A stretch of 8,604 bases of DNA from positions 1 to 8,604 of the forward strand of contig NW_021828386.1 of the NCBI RefSeq assembly GCF_006345805.1, written 5' to 3'. The position numbers and the translations under genes are program-made. This DNA is from Octopus sinensis (lineage: Eukaryota). The notes under the pieces were generated by a model. That model did no database searches and was not told where the DNA came from. It saw only the letters and a program-made list of their open reading frames with translations. Each line of letters begins with the position of its first letter. Position 1 is the stretch's first letter. Below are positions 1-8,604 of the stretch, piece after piece.

Positions 1-79
1 ACATACATACATACACACACACACATACATACATACATACATACATACACACACACATACATACATACATACATACACA
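1..79. repeat. (ACAT)n/(AC)n compound microsatellite
   Basis: Tandem ACAT units interrupted by AC runs, read directly. Confidence 0.97.
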
Positions 80-1109
80 CAGGGAATGACAGAAGTAAAT
101 AAACACCCCATAAAACATCATTTTATATTTATTCTAACTTGTAAAAGTTTATATTTTTTATGAATTGATATTTTTTTTTACATTTCAGGTTCTATATGTG
201 ACTGTTTAAACATGTCTTGTACAAAAGAAACCTTGGAGCTGTCTGGATTTCACAGAGGCCATATTGTGGGTCATTCTGAAGGTGGACATAGTCAGCGTAA
301 AATCGCTGGAACCTTGGCATCCCGCTTTCTATAGTTAATTCACCAGAGAGAGAAAGGTGTCTCATCACATCGCCCAGATCAACCAGGCCCTTCTGACAAG
401 ACCCCCTCTCTTTGCTAAGGGAAGTGTGGAGGGTAATCCTCGTTGCAAGGCCACTGATACAGCAGAACAATTTGATATCAGACTCAGAACATCTGTCAGG
501 TATCTCCACAAACTTGGCTTCTATGGCAGAGCAGAAAAAAAGGAAGCCACGCCTTCGACCCGCCAACATCAAGCGGAGATTGGGCCAGTGAGATGGTGGA
601 GAGGCCACTAGCATTTTGGGACATTGTCACATTCTCTGATTAGTCTAGATTTGCTGTATTGCCTAACAGTGGTCGAGTGTGGATCTGGAGACTCTGTGAT
701 CAAGAATTTGATGCGAAAAGATTGCAGACAACAATGAAACATGGCTGCTATTCTGTGATGGTCTGGGGAGAAATTTGGAGCAATGGTTGATCAGTGCTGG
801 TGGAGTGTGAGGTAAACATAAACTCAGATAATTATGTGTCCTTATTGAAGAAAGGACTCTTTCCAGTCTTCTGCAGTGGTGAAATGATTAAAGAAGACTC
901 TTTATTTAATTGTTAAATGGGTAAAATGACCCAAGATTTGTTGGATGAGAATGGGTTTAAAAAGCTTCCATGGTGAAGCCAGTCACCAGATATAAACCCT
1001 ATTGGACACTTCTGGGACATAATGGACAAAACAGTTCGTTAAAAGAACAAGAATGCATCTTAAAAGCCAGATTCATTGAGATTACTGCATGAAACTTGGT
1101 AACAAACTG
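80..1109 (+). mobile_element. Degenerate Tc1/mariner DNA transposon, 3' truncated
   Basis: Starts CAGGGAATGACAGAAGTAAATAAACACC (80-107), resembling Tc1-type CAGGG...AAACACC TIRs. A decayed transposase follows. Sequence runs into (ACAT)n at ~1110 and no matching right TIR is seen in the window. Confidence 0.88.
212..1102 (+). pseudogene. Tc1-family (DD34E-type) transposase pseudogene
   Basis: Manual translation across frameshifts: ATG 212 MSCTKETLELSGFHRGHIVGHSEGGHSQRKIAG / NLGIPLSIVN (HTH), LHKLGFYGRA / RKPRLRPANIKRRL, WDIVTFSD*SRF (catalytic D at 638-640, GAG>TAG at 641), SVMVWG (752-769), W*SQSPDINPIGHFW (971-1015; cf. Tc1 WPxxSPDLNPIE), LRLLHETW* (to 1102). At least 3 frameshifts and several stops. 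Confidence 0.93.
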
Positions 1110-1176
1110 CATACATACATACACACATACATACATACATACATACATACATACATACATACATACATACATACAT

Positions 1177-1208
<32 letters not shown>
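1110..1208. repeat. (ACAT)n followed by (ACAG)8
   Basis: ACAT array 1110-1176; eight ACAG units 1177-1208. Confidence 0.97.
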
Positions 1209-1209
<1 letters not shown>

Positions 1210-1365
1210 TCGCTCCACACTCAAAGAACAGCCATGCACCACTTTAAGCAAATCACTTCATTTCACGTTGCTCCAGTCAACTCAGCTGGCAAAAGTGAGC
1301 ACTCCTGCGAGGGACTGGCGTCCCATCCAGGGAAGGAGGAAAAATATACGACACAGATGCGGAAA

Positions 1366-1366
<1 letters not shown>
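1210..1366 (+). mobile_element. Truncated CORE-type SINE fragment
   Basis: CORE-like segment TTTAAGCAAATCACTTCATTTCACGTTGCTCCAGTCAACTCAGCTGGCAAAAGTGAG, then CCTGCGAGGGACTGGCGTCCCATCCAGG (1304-1331), 25/28 identical to the reverse complement of 4479-4506 in the SINE at 4401-4685. No intact A/B boxes. Confidence 0.7.
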
Positions 1367-1400
<34 letters not shown>

Positions 1401-1438
1401 ATATATATATATTATATATATGTGTGTGTGTGTGTGTA
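1366..1438. repeat. (CA)n-(TA)n-(TG)n microsatellite
   Basis: Read directly; probably the internal microsatellite of the adjacent SINE. Confidence 0.95.
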
Positions 1439-1569
1439 ACTGCTTCTTTCCATTTCTGTCTACCAAGTCTTTGGTCGGCCCGAGGCTATAGTAGAAGACA
1501 CTAACCGAGGACCTCAACCTGGAACCATGTGGTTGGGAAGCAAGCCAATTACCACAGAGCCACGCCTGC
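1439..1569 (-). mobile_element. tRNA-derived SINE, 5' half (same family as 6006-6982)
   Basis: Minus strand begins GCAGGCGTGGCTCTGTGG with A-box TGGCTCTGTGG (1552-1562) and degenerate B-box AGGTTGAGGTCC (1509-1520). Body GTGTCTTCTACTATAGCCTCGGGCCGACCAAAG aligns by eye with 6870-6982. Similarity to octopus SINEs is recalled. Confidence 0.8.
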
Positions 1570-1675
1570 TTGTCATCTCAAAAGCTATCACCATTTTGAC
1601 CTTCATCTATCTGTTCACATCGCTTTTTTTTTTTTGTTTTGTTTTTTCAATGGTGCCGTCTCCATGTACAGCTTA

Positions 1676-1765
1676 TCACCTTCCGCAGGTAACGGACATC
1701 CTTCTTCTTTTAACATCGAGAACTCTGTGACAACACGTTGGTTCTACTTGGAAACCGTTATCTAC
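1676..1765 (-). other. Candidate coding exon (VDNGFQVEPTCCHRVLDVKRRRMSVTCGR*)
   Basis: Minus strand: pyrimidine tract CTCTTTTTTCCTGTTCTTCATTGCAG| with AG at 1767-1766. Only the phase-0 frame is open; it ends in TGA TAA (1678-1673), or at a weak donor AAG|GTGATA after 1680. No homology recognised. Confidence 0.35.
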
Positions 1766-1877
1766 CTGCAATGAAGAACAGGAAAAAAGAGTTACTGACA
1801 GCAACGATTTCAACTGTCTATATCAATATATAATAATGCTAGGCCTACTTTTCGACTACCTTCAACATAACACCTTT

Positions 1878-2497
1878 GTGTGTGTATATGTGCGTGTGCG
1901 TGTGCGTGTGTGTGCACGCGCGTGTGTGTGCACGCGCGTGTGTGTATAAATTGTACATACATACGTGTGTGTATCACTTTGTATGTTTATAAATTTGTAT
2001 ACTTATATGCATGTGAACAGGTGTCTATGTATGTGGACTCATATTTTTGCATGTGTATGTATATACATAGTTATACATGTGTGTGCGTGTGTGTATACAT
2101 GTGTATCTACAATATATTTTATTAATATATATGCATATATACGTATATATATATATATATGCATATATATATATACACATATATACACATATATATATAT
2201 ATGCATATATAGATACACATATACACCTTAAATATTTGTGCATATGTAGTATATTGTATACGCACACATATACAAAATACATACATATATATACATACAT
2301 ATATGCAGCTATATGTATACACACTTCCCATATATACGTATAAATATATACATATATATACACAGATATATATATACAGATATATGTGTGTACGTGTGTA
2401 TGTTAATATGTATATATTTATCTATGTATGTATTTATGTATGTGTGTGTGTATGTATGTATGTATATATGTATGTATGTATGTAAGTATGTATGTAT
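1878..2497. repeat. Degenerate (TG)n/(TA)n/(TATG)n tract with an alternating purine-pyrimidine GC-rich start
   Basis: Read directly; 1878-1947 alternates purine/pyrimidine and contains two copies of GTGTGTGCACGCGC (Z-DNA-prone by composition). Confidence 0.92.
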
Positions 2498-2774
2498 GAC
2501 AAAAATCGAACAGTTAAAGAAAGTGAAGTCCAGCCGACAATTGAGTTTGTAGAAACAATAATAAAATGGCGACTATAATGATTTCTAGCTGTCGGCTGCT
2601 CCAAACGAAAATGGCTTCTCTATATTCACATTGAAATGATCATAATGTTATTAGGTGTCGGCTCTATTAGTATCGGCCAGCCAGCATTTACAATTGTCGA
2701 GTAACTAATCACCGTTACAAATTACAACTGGCTTAAGTCTTATTTTCGTTCTATTCACTTTATTACAATAGATG

Positions 2775-3165
2775 CTGTTGTTTTTAATGTTGTGGTCGTT
2801 GTTAGTGTAGCGAGCGTGGCTGCTCGTTCGAGATGGCGGTCGTCGCCATTGTACCTATTTCTTTATATCTTTTTGTTCCGTTTTCTTTTTCGTCTTTTCC
2901 TAGACTTTGTTCCAGTCCTCCTTAGTTTACTTGTTGTTGTTGCTGTTGTTGTTGTTGTTGTTGTTGTGTTGTTATACTTCTTGTATTCCTTCGGCTTCGT
3001 ATTCTTCATTTCCTTCTTTTTGCTCACTCTTTATATTGGTAGTTACATATTGTTGTTGTTGTTGTTCTTGTTAGTATTAACATTATTACCGTTATTGCCA
3101 GTAGTAGTAGCAGTAGTAGTAGCAGCAGCGGCAGTAGCAGCAGTTGTGGTGTTGATGTTACTGTC
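2775..3165. repeat. Degenerate trinucleotide tract (GTT)n/(GTA)n/(GCA)n with T-rich spacers
   Basis: Read directly; explains the poly-V/L/A ORF 2792-3172. Confidence 0.85.
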
Positions 3166-3223
3166 GATTTGAATCAATATGTTACCCTCAAGTGGTATTT
3201 ACTATTCTGTGTGCTTCCGTTTT

Positions 3224-3254
3224 ATATATACACACATATACATACATATGTATG

Positions 3255-3303
<49 letters not shown>

Positions 3304-3450
3304 TCATACTCACGCACACTCACACATACATACATACACACACACATATAAATACATATATATATATATATATACAGAGAGAGAGAGAGATAATATATAT
3401 ATATATATATATATGTGTATATATATATGTGTGTGTGTGTGTATGTATAC

Positions 3451-3483
<33 letters not shown>

Positions 3484-3712
3484 CATTCATTATACATATA
3501 CATTCATATATATATATATATACTTAAACAAACGTAAGTATATACTTGCTTATATATTTATATATATGAGTATATGCCTATATAACTGTGTATATGTGTA
3601 CATGTTTATACATGTCTGTATATGTCTGTTTGCGTGTATGCGTGTACGTTTGTATATGTTTCTATGTGCGCACATGTCTATATATGAATATGTATGTATG
3701 TGTCTATGTGTG
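3224..3712. repeat. Compound (TA)n/(TG)n/(CA)n/(AG)n microsatellites
   Basis: Read directly; source of the Y/I/C/V/H/T-rich ORFs. Confidence 0.93.
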
Positions 3713-3972
3713 CTTTTATACAGTAATGCTATGCGATTGGGTCTCTCTCGTTTCTTCTCACAATATTTTACAACTTTCAATTATTTTTTTTCCTTTCGTT
3801 TCTTGTTTTTTTCTTTTCCTTTTTTGCTTCTTTTGTTTTCCAATTTGTCGAACTCACTTGTCTGTCAGTTTGAATATATGTTACAAGTAACTCAGTCTGC
3901 ACCGAGATCTTATTTTATTTCATGTATATACCTATGTCTACGTATGCACACACAGCATATAAATATAAATAC

Positions 3973-3973
<1 letters not shown>

Positions 3974-4017
<44 letters not shown>
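3974..4017. repeat. Perfect (TA)n
   Basis: Read directly. Confidence 0.97.
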
Positions 4018-4020
<3 letters not shown>

Positions 4021-4400
4021 CGACTTGCAGACGGGAGAGATAGAACTTAATATATAAAGGAGAATATATGATGAATCATTTTATTTTTTCTTAATCGAAA
4101 AGCTACAGCAGCACAAGTGCCTTGAATTTCGTGCCAATGCACTTAACGTGGGTTCGTTGACACGAAATCTATCCCATGAATCAACGCAGCTTCTTGGCTA
4201 ACATGCACACATACCACACAAACACATGCACACAAACAGATATATTTAGAGATTTGATCTCAGTGAATCTAGCCAATGAAAACTAATCAAATTTACGTTA
4301 GCAAACGTAGTTTGGAAAGTTCGAAACCTAGGGCCTAGATTATCCACATCTGGGTTGTACATTTAATGTTCTTCCTACAGATATGATGAACTTTTTATAC

Positions 4401-4685
4401 TTGTTTGTTGTTCCTTCTCGAGTCATGCCTGGCTCATAAGGGCCGGTTTCCCGGTTTTCTTGGCGTATAGGTTCCCCACCTGGACGGGACGCCGGTCCGT
4501 CGCAGGTGAGCTGCAAGATGCAGGAGGAAAGAGTGAGAGAAAGTTGTGGTAAAAGAGTCAGCCGGAGCCGCGTGGAGCTTAGGTGTTTCGCTCATAAACA
4601 CACACATCACCCTGTTTGAGATTCGAACTCGCGATCCCTTGACCGCGAGTTCGCTGCTCTAACCACTAGGCCATGTGCCTCCACA
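4401..4685 (-). mobile_element. Near full-length tRNA-derived SINE
   Basis: Minus strand head TGTGGAGGCACATGGCCTAGTGGTTAGAGCAGCG: A-box TGGCCTAGTGG (4663-4673), B-box GAGTTCGAATCT (4619-4630). CORE-like TGAGCGAAACACCTAAGCTCCAC, 3' module CCTGCGACGGACCGGCGTCCCGTCCAGG, and an (A)ACA-type tail at 4401-4412. No TSD found. Confidence 0.85.
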
Positions 4686-4973
4686 TGGGTAATATTTTGC
4701 CAGAAAAAATATTTAAAGTTGATGAAAGAGTCATATATTAGCAGCGCAAACCTGAACGTCCGTACAACGTGATCAGATCCCTTGAACTTTCCTTCAATGA
4801 TTTACCTACCTACGGTGCTACGTACGTGACATTCGGGGATAAACTGCAGTGTTTACCAGACAACTTGACCTTGAGGTGGTCGAAGAAGACGTTGGACATT
4901 TGAAAGAAGCTGAAAGCGAAAGCGTGAGAAACACGAAATTGATGGAGCTGGAAATGAAGCGCCATTGAGAAGG

Positions 4974-5004
4974 TTTTCGAAATTTTCGAAATTTTCGAAA
5001 TTTT
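4974..5004. repeat. (TTTTCGAAA)3 tandem of a palindrome-containing 9-mer
   Basis: Perfect copies at 4974-4982, 4983-4991 and 4992-5000, followed by TTTT. Confidence 0.95.
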
Positions 5005-5250
5005 TTCTCTTATGAGGTTTTCACGCTATCTACCTGACAATTTCTTGTTAAGTTTTCCTTATTAAGTAGTTGTCCTTAATTGCTAAATTTTTATTCCGAA
5101 AAAACTTTTCCTCTCCCGAAATGCAATTCGTAAAAGTTTGCCATTTATCCGGATGTAATATATGTAAACTCACCATGTGCTTCGTTGATGTTGATCAGTT
5201 AGCTGATCGGCTTAAGCGGGGCAGGGTCGTTGTTTATTTATAATACATTC

Positions 5251-5298
5251 AGGCCTGCTGATGAGTACGTAAGTATGAAATCACTGTGATACAGGTCT
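5251..5298 (+). ncRNA. Minimal type I hammerhead ribozyme motif
   Basis: AGGCCTG (stem I 5', 5251-5257), CTGATGA (core, 5258-5264), GTAC-GTAA-GTAT (stem II with GNRA loop, 5265-5276), GAA (5277-5279), ATCAC-T-GTGAT (stem III, 5280-5290), A (H17, 5291), CAGGTCT (stem I 3', 5292-5298; 6 WC + 1 G-U). All core positions match the hammerhead consensus except 11.1 (U instead of C). Confidence 0.82.
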
Positions 5299-5395
5299 AT
5301 TTTTTTTTTTAAATGTCTTACTTTGAAAATTGCATTCGGTTGGGATTAGTAATATTTTTGGTAGAAATGACTAATTGTCCCTCTTAGCGTTTGGC

Positions 5396-5434
5396 ATGTA
5401 TGTATAATGCCTTCTGGTATGTATGTATAATGCC
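5396..5434. repeat. Short direct repeat ATGTATGTATAATGCC x2 (23-nt period)
   Basis: Identical 16-mers at 5396-5411 and 5419-5434. Confidence 0.9.
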
Positions 5435-5435
5435 C

Positions 5436-5448
5436 TCTATATATAAAT

Positions 5449-5479
<31 letters not shown>

Positions 5480-5592
5480 GCATATGTATATATAATATAT
5501 ATATATAAATATATATGTATGTGTATGTGTACATATATATATATATATGTATATACGTATGTGTGTGTGTGTATAGATATAAGTATATGTGT
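5436..5592. repeat. (TA)n/(TG)n microsatellite
   Basis: Read directly. Confidence 0.93.
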
Positions 5593-5772
5593 ACTTAAGT
5601 GGATTTCTGATGGATAGAGTTAGATTTGGCGTGAGGCAATTATAAACGTGAGTATTAGAGTATTATCGGTGTTAGTGCGAGAATAATGTATATCATTTGC
5701 AATTTTCATATCGTTAATAGTGAGCAAGGCTGTAATGAACTTATCTGGTTTGGGTACTCTTCGTTGGAGTGA

Positions 5773-5945
5773 ATATATACATATATATATACATACTTGT
5801 GCGTGTATATATATATATATATATTGATTGGTGTGTATATATGCATACCACCATATACGTATAGACGTATAATGTAGATTTGTATATTCACACAAGCATG
5901 TGTGTGTGTGTCTGTCTGCGTGTATGAGATCCCGTGTGTATACGT
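5773..5945. repeat. Degenerate (TA)n/(TG)n microsatellite
   Basis: Read directly. Confidence 0.8.
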
Positions 5946-6086
5946 CTATATTTTGTGTAACTTATGTCCTCAACTTCTGACCTGAACGAGTTTATATATA
6001 CACATTTCCTTTATTCTTTTATTCTTCTACTTGTTTCAATCACTGGAACACACCCATTCTGGAGCACTGCACTGAATAGTTTAATA

Positions 6087-6651
6087 GAATATTTCTCAAC
6101 CATTGTTTTTCTTTTTTTATCTAAGGAACTTTTTGATTACTAATTTATTCTGGTGGACCTTCAAAGTCAACTGATTTTTAGAAACTTATAGACTCGTCTT
6201 TCAAAATCCCTATTTTGTTTTTCACCCATTAACTTTGAATTATTTAACTCTTTACAGATTAGATTATTCTATCAAACATAATGCTTATTGGTTCACATTG
6301 ATTTGAATTAATCATGCATTATCTCATATCTTCAAGATCTTGATGGTGCAATTACTTAATGTAGAATAACATTGTAGGGTAGGTGTGAGAGCCTGGATCT
6401 GGTCAGTTTGAACATAAAACAGATTAAATATTTTGGCCTTGATATGGCCGCTTTAAATACTAAAGGGTTAAAACGTTAGAGAAAGAAATCCGGTCGTTTC
6501 TTGCAATAAATACATTTCAATCAAAATTTTCTCATGGGCCCTTAGAAAGCTACCTGTGGTTCCCTAATTTACCATTTTCTTGTGTGGACCCTGCCCCCAA
6601 TGTCTTATATGAAGCCCCAGGAGACATATGGAGCCCGGTCGAGACCCAATG
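6087..6651. mobile_element. Non-autonomous hAT (Charlie-like) MITE
   Basis: Left end GAATATTTCTCAACC (6087-6101) and reverse complement of right end CATTGGGTCTCGACC (6637-6651) match the Charlie-type TIR CAGTGGTTCTCAACC at 11/15 and 12/15. 8-bp TSD GTTTAATA (6079-6086) / GCTTAATA (6652-6659), 7/8 identical with central TA. Subterminal GTGGACC motifs at 6153 and 6584. Confidence 0.78.
6248..6467. mobile_element. piggyBac-type MITE (220 bp)
   Basis: TTAA on both sides (6244-6247, 6468-6471); termini CTCTTTA... and ...TAAAGGG (reverse complement CCCTTTA, 6/7). CCC...GGG ends with TTAA TSD are the piggyBac hallmark. No ORF. Confidence 0.82.
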
Positions 6652-6983
6652 GCTTAATAAAGGAAATCAACCCCAGGACTAATTCTTTTTAAACTTGGTA
6701 CTTGATGTGTTGGTTTCTTTTGCCCAACCGCTAAGTAACGGGGACGTAAACAAACCAACCCCAGTTGTCAAGTGAAGTAGGAACATACGCGCATACACAC
6801 ACACACACACACACCCATATACACAGAAATACACAGACACACAGACACACAAACACACACACACATACACACGGGCTAACATACAGTTTAAACCTAGCAA
6901 ATTCACTCGCAAAACACTAGTCGACCCAGGGCTCTGACGCCGTGCAGTGGGACTGAACCTAAAACCACATACTTATGAAGCGA

Positions 6984-7490
6984 GGTGATGGTGATAGTGG
7001 CGGTGTTGGAGGAGACGAAGATGAGTTCATGGCGGCAAGATATTTCATGAATGTAATCATGATAGTGTTCATGATGATGATTATGATGAGAGAGGTTTAC
7101 TGCTGCTGTTGTTGCTGGTGCAGATGCTGATGGTGGTGGTGGTGGTGGTGGTGATAGGGGGGGATAACGATGATGATTTTGATGGTGACGATGACGAGGA
7201 TGATGGAGGCGGCGTAATGAATGACGATGACAATGACAATAATGAGGACGAGGAGGAGGCGGATGATGATGAGGATGAGGATGACGACGACAACGAAAAA
7301 AATGGTGATGTTATTGATGTCGCTACTGCTGCCACTGCTGCCGCTGAAGATGATGATGATGATGATGGTAATGATGGTGATAATGACGATAATGGTGGTG
7401 GTGGTGGTGATGACCATGATGATGATGACTACGACGATGTCGAAAATGATTATGTTATTCATGATTATGAGAACGACGATGATAACAAGT
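6984..7490. repeat. Degenerate (GAT)n/(GGT)n/(GAC)n trinucleotide tract
   Basis: Read directly; gives poly-D, poly-M and poly-V frames. Confidence 0.93.
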
Positions 7491-8004
7491 GATCATCATA
7501 GTTATCATCATAACCATCATCATCACAACTACCGTCATCGTTGGCACCATCATCATCATCATCATCAACATCACCATTAACATCGACATTCTCTTCGTTG
7601 TCGTTGCCATCATTATCATCATCATCATCACCATTACCTCCACCACCACCGTCACCTCCATCATCGTTACCTCCACCATCACCAATACCACCATTATCAT
7701 CATCACCACCGGCACCATCATCACCTTCATCGTCATCGTCATCATCATCTTCATCACCACCATCACCATCATCATCATTGTCATCATCATCATCGTCATC
7801 ATCATCATCATCATCGTCATCATCATCATCATCATCATCATCACCACCATCATCATCTTCATCGTCATCATCTTCATCATCATCATCATCATCATCATCT
7901 TCATCATCATCTTCATCATCATCATCATCATCATCATCACTATCGTCATTATCATAATCATCATCATCATCTTCCTCATCATCCTCATAAACATCATCAT
8001 TGTC

Positions 8005-8035
<31 letters not shown>

Positions 8036-8055
8036 TCATCATCATCATCACCACC
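7491..8055. repeat. Degenerate (ATC)n/(ACC)n trinucleotide tract, inverted relative to 6984-7490
   Basis: Read directly; strand switch at TGATCA (7490-7495). Confidence 0.95.
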
Positions 8056-8380
8056 TGTATGTGCGATGGTGAAGAATGAAAATTCAGGTGCTAAATGGTC
8101 TGGCAAAAACATCTGCCAACAAACTATAACTTCCTCTTCTAGCATCATTTACCGTTTTTTTTTCTTCTCTCTTTTCTTTCTTCCCTCCACCTCCCTCCCC
8201 CCGCCTTCACCCCCACCCTCCCACCATCTTCCGCTCCGAGAGACGCTGAATTGTATTTGTTGATTTATTTCGTTCTGAAAATCGACGAAATATTTACCAA
8301 AATAAAAATATGAGAGAAGGAGAGAGAGGGTGGGGGGAGAAGGAAAAAAAATAACAAGCATTTAAAAACGAAAACGGTAT

Positions 8381-8388
8381 AATGTGTG

Positions 8389-8423
<35 letters not shown>

Positions 8424-8436
8424 GTGTTTGTGTGTA

Positions 8437-8469
<33 letters not shown>

Positions 8470-8604
8470 GTGTACAATCAAGTACATATGTACATAGACA
8501 CACGCGTGCACAGATATTTTATACATATGTGTGTGTGTGTATATGTATATGTATATATATATACATATAGATATCCGTATATATATATATATATGTGTGT
8601 GTGT
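8381..8604. repeat. (TG)n/(TA)n microsatellites
   Basis: Read directly. Confidence 0.95.

Follow-up and report, generated by a model that had tools for sequence, protein, structure and literature searches.

The window analysed here is a stretch of 8,604 nucleotides of Octopus sinensis DNA (RefSeq assembly GCF_006345805.1, contig NW_021828386.1, positions 1 to 8,604 of the forward strand). It consists of AT-rich animal DNA filled with microsatellites and carries a hammerhead ribozyme motif on the + strand at 5251–5298. The motif lies within a larger region of predicted RNA structure. The parts of both are the following.

5087–5368, + strand: structured RNA domain around the ribozyme, the candidate element unit (282 nt, 35% GC; from comparison of its fold with shuffles)
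5087–5148, + strand: 5′ arm of the closing stem, paired with 5310–5368 in the MFE and centroid folds
5151–5250, + strand: 100-nt imperfect hairpin with the apex GAUCAG-UUAG-CUGAUC (fold compared with shuffles)
5251–5257, + strand: 5′ strand of helix I, AGGCCUG, paired with 5292–5298 in every fold
5258–5264, + strand: catalytic core C3 to A9, CUGAUGA (sequence reading and descriptor)
5265–5268 and 5273–5276, + strand: helix II, GUAC and GUAU, with the loop GUAA at 5269–5272 (present in all folds)
5277–5279, + strand: core residues G12, A13 and A14, GAA (sequence reading and descriptor)
5280–5284 and 5286–5290, + strand: helix III, AUCAC and GUGAU around U5285, with A15.1 at 5280 and U16.1 at 5290
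5291/5292, + strand: predicted cleavage site between A17 and C1.1 (from hammerhead numbering)
5292–5298, + strand: 3′ strand of helix I, CAGGUCU (sequence reading and folds)
5300–5310, + strand: T11 run, an unpaired strand from helix I to the closing stem in the predicted three-way junction
5310–5368, + strand: 3′ arm of the closing stem (local alignment and folds)

Read directly on the + strand, the letters of 5251–5298 run from AGGCCUG through CUGAUGA, GUAC, GUAA, GUAU, GAAA, UCAC, U, GUGA, U and A to CAGGUCU. An earlier, sequence-only reading of this DNA had described a complete type I hammerhead with these helices, core and cut site, and each element was found again exactly as described. 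The residues that define a hammerhead are C3 U4 G5 A6 N7 G8 A9, G12 A13 A14, an A15.1–U16.1 pair and H17. All of them are present, as CUGAUGA at 5258–5264, GAA at 5277–5279, the A5280–U5290 pair and A5291. The heptamer CTGATGA occurs only once in the window, both strands counted, and that occurrence is the core itself. Helices II and III are capped and helix I is open, which is the type I connectivity, with lengths of 7 bp for helix I (including one G5253·U5296 wobble), 4 bp for helix II and 4–5 bp for helix III. The departure from the conserved pattern is the 10.1/11.1 pair, normally G–C, which is here a G5265·U5276 wobble, as the earlier reading had also remarked. Judged by its letters, 5251–5298 is a hammerhead at the level of the motif, with one non-canonical pair.

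Our own hammerhead descriptor gave 5251–5298 as the single solution on both strands of the window. A relaxed version, allowing a YUGANRA core, a bulge after A9 and helices down to 4/3/1 bp, still yielded this locus alone; the earlier remark that the window holds no partner copy is borne out, as no second hammerhead appears on either strand. For a motif of the observed stringency, an independent-position estimate with the composition of the window gives 7.4e-12 per position. For the window this amounts to 1.3e-7, and for a genome of 2.7 Gb to about 0.04, both strands included. Relaxing all helices to 5/3/2 bp lifts the latter figure to about 4. The motif therefore exceeds chance expectation and is confirmed as non-random. 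Searching the whole window with Rfam at gathering scores gave no match. When the filters were loosened for a 62-nt piece, Hammerhead_HH9 came out best (15.5 bits, E 0.078, cut-off 52), in an alignment spanning the core and all three helices. An alignment that is complete but below threshold indicates that the motif fits the consensus and has no close kin in any curated seed family. Descriptor and Rfam had both been proposed as checks of the motif: run on the window, the former singled it out, and the latter fell short of the cut-off.

Whatever the context folded, helices I and II are retained in both the MFE and the centroid structure. In the RNAfold MFE structure both are kept, and helix III is displaced by pairing between UGAU, which belongs to the core, and AUCA, which belongs to helix III. 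Relative to the MFE, the active fold, in which helix III has 4 bp and a CUG loop, costs 3.0 kcal/mol, whether the 48-mer or the whole domain is considered; the 48-mer fold has a z-score of just −1.4. An active fold above the MFE is usual for hammerheads, as the energy model ignores their core contacts.

Helix III (5280–5290) is self-complementary save for a central U·U. Because a 1-nt loop cannot close, the sequence-only reading had taken the ribozyme to act as a dimer. The premise holds, but the conclusion goes too far, since a 4 bp helix with a CUG triloop is feasible (+0.8 kcal/mol for the hairpin alone) and is longer than the 1–2 bp of helix III in canonical metazoan hammerheads (PMC7229834; PMC4209133). 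Amphibian hammerheads require dimers, whereas invertebrate ones with a 2 bp helix III cleave efficiently as monomers (PMC7229834; PMC4209133). Two copies could form a helix III duplex of 10 bp around the U·U (−10.1 kcal/mol), and cofolding of two 48-mers predicts a double hammerhead with helix III in trans, at −30.5 compared with 2 × −12.4 kcal/mol. The Kd of the trans dimer predicted from this energy difference is about 1e-4 M. At such an affinity a dimer of unlinked transcripts is implausible, and a tandem neighbour alone would benefit. On these models obligate dimerization is possible, not established.

The hammerhead sits in a strongly structured domain. The + strand of 5087–5368 has an MFE of −87.7 kcal/mol, compared with −58.7 ± 4.3 kcal/mol for shuffles (z −6.8; none of 200 shuffles equalled it), and refolding 4990–5450 returns the same pairs. 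The 236 nt of 5110–5345 fold at −78.3 kcal/mol (z −5.8) on the + strand and at −52.5 kcal/mol on the − strand, and the permuted 236-nt unit, folded as a circle, reaches −71.3 kcal/mol. A sliding 240-nt scan of 3900–6900 places the ribozyme domain at the most negative z among non-microsatellite windows. The predicted architecture is a three-way junction formed by the closing stem, the 100-nt hairpin and, as its third arm, the hammerhead. The core of the closing stem is an inverted repeat (5116–5148 and 5310–5340) that brackets the motif, with a local alignment score of 25 compared with 19.7 ± 2.6 for shuffles; by this measure the outer inverted repeat is weak by itself. Helix I ends in the junction, which includes an 11-nt U-rich strand, the T11 run starting two bases past the helix, and no known contact motif, of the loop 1/loop 2 kind that natural fast-cleaving hammerheads have, is recognisable between this end and the GUAA of loop 2. 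The earlier reading had suggested that helix I might be extended distally by ACAUU and AAUGU. This complementarity is present in the letters, but it is formed in no predicted fold. ACAUUC (5245–5250) instead closes the 100-nt hairpin with GGAUGU (5151–5156), and AAAUGU pairs with 5142–5147.

The last base of the 100-nt hairpin adjoins the first base of helix I. On the + strand the hairpin folds at −39.8 kcal/mol (z −7.0), compared with −21.2 kcal/mol (z −3.65) on the − strand. Alignment of its arms gives 32 Watson–Crick pairs, 8 G·U pairs and 0 A·C appositions; the excess of G·U has p = 0.004 at equal odds and p of about 0.07 given the G+T-rich composition of the hairpin. Taken together, the one-sided G·U pattern and the strand asymmetry point to structure at the RNA level on the ribozyme strand. 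The one-sidedness could result from selection on the + strand RNA, or from editing-type A-to-G changes before reverse transcription. The structured domain is an addition beyond the motif itself and a useful seed for defining a family. Two other readings of this region were set aside. A MITE was rejected as the source of the inverted repeat on the grounds that reading by eye shows no target-site duplication at 5116/5339, that a hairpin is nested inside and that stability differs between the strands. A minus-strand retroposon with a poly(A) tail at 5310–5300 was dropped because the pairing crosses the T run.

Around this domain, the block 4018–5454, which comprises the ribozyme domain and a SINE-like sequence, is flanked by (TA)n runs at 3974–4017 and 5455–5478. 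TA runs are frequent all over the window, not just beside the block. The block, of 1.4 kb, may be a single insertion into a TA microsatellite; the distance from the cut site to the downstream TA run is about 155 bp. The SINE-like insert (about 4420–4690, − strand) splits the block. Its tRNA-like head, on the − strand near 4610–4687, contains a perfect A box, TGGCCTAGTGG (near 4650–4687), and a B-box-like AGTTCGAATCT; neither ARAGORN nor Rfam called a tRNA in this head. Between the structured domain and the downstream TA run there is a 23-bp tandem duplication on the + strand (5393–5438; GGCATGTATGTATAATGCCTTCT and GGTATGTATGTATAATGCCCTCT), whose copies form a hairpin pair in the fold of 4990–5450. 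Further upstream, a decayed catalytic domain of a Tc1/mariner-type transposase with four in-frame stops lies at 614–1039 (+ strand). It matches Sleeping Beauty SB100X (5cr4_A) with an E-value of 2e-13, and Pfam is silent there at E ≤ 0.1.

A blastn comparison of the window with itself shows that the domain block matches itself alone, and no tandem repeat of the unit exists in the 8.6 kb. No partial second unit was found either as a direct repeat between the upstream and downstream flanks (score 19, compared with 19.7 for shuffles). The exact 27-nt ribozyme pattern has 0 matches in metagenome contigs. A relaxed pattern that keeps helix II alone gives 47 loci, 29 metagenomic and 18 viral, none of which has helix I, helix III or flanks in common with 5251–5298. 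About two-thirds of these are type III hammerheads of phage or marine origin with a GUAC-NNNN-GUAC helix II, and the other third, mostly coding-like chance matches, are without flanking helices. Five of the metagenome loci (L001, L002, L007, L028 and L042) are near-identical type III hammerheads of the phage type. Four of them have GUAC whereas L002 has GUAU, that is U11.1, and hence a change of C11.1 to U occurs naturally in a real, unrelated phage hammerhead. No report of cephalopod hammerheads was found in the literature searched.

No coding capacity was detected in association with the ribozyme. None of ten open reading frames taken from the window is present in the protein collection by exact look-up. 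Pfam finds no domain in the six frames of 4680–5260 and 5590–6760, and two protein searches with concatenated open stretches, from 5048–5372 and from 4025–5075 respectively, returned nothing at E ≤ 10. No remnant of a Penelope-like reverse transcriptase (RT) or GIY-YIG endonuclease was detected by Pfam or protein search in the flanks searched.

The setting proposed by the sequence-only reading for such ribozymes, namely Penelope-like elements (PLEs) and satellites, agrees with the literature, in which retrozymes also belong to it (PMC4209133; PMC7229834). Metazoan non-LTR retrozymes are tandem repeats of 150–450 bp with type I hammerheads that are expressed as small circRNAs (Cervera and de la Pena, 2020, PMC7229834), and the GC content of their monomers is below 45–50% (PMC7229834). 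The octopus locus resembles them in its animal host and in having a type I hammerhead within the unit, with a helix I of 6–7 bp, a helix II of 4 bp and a self-complementary helix III. The unit is likewise non-coding, low in GC and a few hundred nucleotides long, with a compact, highly paired predicted fold; its size (236–282 nt), GC content (0.35–0.38), lack of coding sequence and fold (z −6.8) all fit published retrozyme monomers. It differs in being one copy rather than a tandem array, and a head-to-tail array of at least two units of 150–450 bp is absent from the window. Helix III has 4–5 bp here, in contrast to 1–2 bp with a tetraloop in retrozymes, and the GNRA loop 2, the G·U at 10.1/11.1 and the lack of a recognisable contact between loops 1 and 2 are further differences.

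The hammerheads of PLE pseudo-LTRs (pLTRs) are similar in being dispersed single motifs, in the dimer proposed for them via a palindromic helix III and in a possible microsatellite insertion (PMC4209133; PMC8557442). Unlike a PLE, the window has no RT or GIY-YIG open reading frame and no second pLTR: two direct pLTRs, each with a hammerhead, would mark such an element, whereas there is one hammerhead here and the long direct repeats are solely microsatellite. The minimal PLE ribozymes (min-HHR) have a helix II of 6–8 bp, an additional base separating A9 from 10.1, a helix I of 4–5 bp and a helix III that is absent or a 2-nt palindrome (Cervera and de la Pena, 2014, PMC4209133; Craig et al., 2021, PMC8557442). 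The octopus motif does not match this architecture: helix I has 7 bp, helix II has 4 bp, no extra base follows A9 and helix III has 4–5 bp. The ribozymes of newt satellite 2 and cave-cricket pDo500 share the type I fold, the conserved core and a helix III that can pair between copies to give a double hammerhead (PMC7229834; PMC2837043). They are however high-copy and tandem, with a helix III of 1–2 bp for which dimers are truly required, whereas the octopus motif is a single copy with a possible monomeric helix III of 4 bp. The amniote intronic hammerheads HH9 and HH10 (Rfam RF02275 and RF02277) are solitary genomic type I motifs as well and provide the best, though weak, Rfam alignment. They differ from the octopus motif, which reaches 15.5 bits where the gathering score is 52, has no apparent gene context and lies in a repeat landscape of invertebrate type.

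What the analysis shows directly is the motif and how improbable it is by chance, the structured domain with its strand preference, the presence of one copy in the window and the lack of coding capacity. From these we infer the class of element to which the locus belongs, its life cycle and its level of activity. The explanation that we favour, and regard as probable, is that 5251–5298 is a genuine hammerhead of functional ancestry and that it resides in a small non-coding retroelement, present here as a solo copy, from the lineage of animal non-LTR retrozymes and Penelope pLTRs. Dispersed single hammerheads from truncated PLEs have been described (PMC4209133), as have solo retrozyme monomers, in a study that derives retrozymes from PLE pLTRs (bioRxiv 10.64898/2026.07.22.740005). 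The transposon-rich host, of which the Tc1-like transposase remnant is an example, was counted in favour of a retroelement. Counted against it were the lack of related copies in the collections searched, of a tandem repeat or second hammerhead in the 8.6 kb and of any RT or GIY-YIG remnant, together with the sub-threshold Rfam score, a helix III and a GNRA loop 2 that depart from the canonical metazoan form, the p of about 0.07 for the G·U excess once composition is considered, and the weakness of the outer inverted repeat by itself.

In this favoured explanation, + strand transcripts of tandem units of the parent element would fold helices I and II, and helix III would form either within one unit or across two neighbouring units. 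G12 and the 2′-OH of G8 would then catalyse the attack of the A17 2′-OH on the A5291–C5292 phosphate, releasing RNA of unit length with 5′-OH and 2′,3′-cyclic phosphate ends. Ligation of the freed RNA would give a compact, highly paired circle, which a Penelope-type reverse transcriptase could copy back into DNA. The hammerhead is contiguous and central in the domain, whose ends lie at the closing-stem tip, an arrangement that would fit a circular or multimeric template better than a cleaved linear monomer. With a lone unit at the locus no monomer can be excised, and a transcript crossing it would be cut once at most. The G10.1·U11.1 pair, the lack of an evident loop–loop contact and the predicted cost of 3 kcal/mol for the active fold suggest that cleavage would be slow or would not occur. 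A relic is thus the best description of the locus, the solo copy being probably weak or dead.

It is conceivable, although we hold it to be distinctly improbable, that the 282-nt domain is more than this, namely a full-length, circularly permuted solo copy from an undescribed retrozyme family of cephalopods or molluscs. In such a family the long self-complementary helix III would act as a switch, leaving the monomer inactive and giving a double hammerhead when transcripts are tandem, and the G·U bias would have arisen from selection on the + strand RNA or from A-to-I editing before reverse transcription.

Several explanations compete with that of a solo retroelement copy. The one to be taken most seriously, if still unlikely, is that the block is the 3′ pLTR end of a 5′-truncated autonomous PLE inserted in a (TA)n microsatellite, the ribozyme being the element's own pLTR hammerhead. 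The position of the block between its two (TA)n runs favours this, as do the PLE clades with a bias for insertion into microsatellites (PMC8557442), the fact that most PLE hammerheads are single motifs of truncated copies (PMC4209133) and the active Penelope families of octopus genomes (PMC13282606). The distance of about 155 bp from the cut site to the TA run may also be compared with anole Poseidon insertions, which stop about 110–120 bp past the hammerhead (PMC11167929). Against it, the six frames of 4030–5260 contain no RT, no GIY-YIG and no protein similarity of any kind, no open reading frame begins at or past the ribozyme, and the long helix II, the post-A9 base and the absent or 2-nt helix III typical of the min-HHR of metazoan PLEs are missing. 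The T11 run offers a different connection to mobile elements: starting so close to helix I, it could be the terminator of a SINE-like ribozyme element transcribed by RNA polymerase III, comparable to Schistosoma Sm-alpha, in a SINE-rich host genome that also provides the tRNA-like A box on the minus strand near 4650–4687. We consider this highly improbable. Reading by eye reveals no A or B box on the + strand of 5087–5250, the structured domain runs across and past the T run, and neither ARAGORN nor Rfam detects a tRNA-like head.

Neither of the two remaining explanations involves a mobile element. If a large, AT-rich and repetitive genome had matched the hammerhead consensus by accident, with no ribozyme ancestry, this would account for the failure to reach the curated Rfam thresholds, for the modest z of the 48-mer, for the non-canonical 10.1/11.1 pair and for the lack of relatives in the collections searched, and many windows had been screened in the first-stage scan. 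Such an accident is nevertheless improbable, given that about 0.04 such motifs are expected per 2.7 Gb genome, that a figure of about 4 is attained solely at the 5/3/2 bp relaxation, and that the motif forms part of a strongly structured domain of the same strand. Still harder to sustain is a host-domesticated ribozyme in a + strand intron or UTR that cuts a host transcript in cis, in the manner of the amniote HH9 and HH10. Its lone, stand-alone nature, the stable helix I, the top Rfam alignment to HH9 and a flanking RNA structure that could present the ribozyme are in keeping with this role. The HH9 score is however far below its cut-off, the searches made show no similarity to exons or proteins in the vicinity, and the neighbours are transposons and microsatellites. 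The G10.1·U11.1 pair moreover speaks against purifying selection for activity, which leaves domestication very doubtful.

The hammerhead at 5251–5298 is real but ordinary. Hammerheads of this class number thousands per genome in many invertebrates, and a solo, probably decayed copy is consequently unsurprising. As a single copy of this kind it has small consequence for the host locus, and its worth lies in seeding a genome-wide search for the family. If the retroelement family proposed above is real, one more animal lineage hosts hammerhead-bearing retroelements, and the combination of a long palindromic helix III with a GNRA loop 2 would be a variant for studies of monomer/dimer switching in self-cleavage.

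The remainder of the window contains some minor features. Upstream of the structured domain, 4813–5025 has a higher GC content of about 45% and is open in all three minus-strand frames; its open stretches have no protein relatives in the searches made. Within it, at about 4977–5005, GAAATTTTC is repeated three times in tandem. A second SINE-like piece at about 6640–6960, which presumably resembles an abundant octopus SINE, contains a (CA)n run and ends in ‘...GTGGGACTGAACC’. Finally, long triplet-repeat arrays occupy 7100–8100, of GAT/GGT type on one side and complementary to it on the other. They form inverted repeats of 130–220 nt with about 71–75% complementarity, and give rise to spurious D-, M-, I- and S-rich open reading frames of up to 227 aa.
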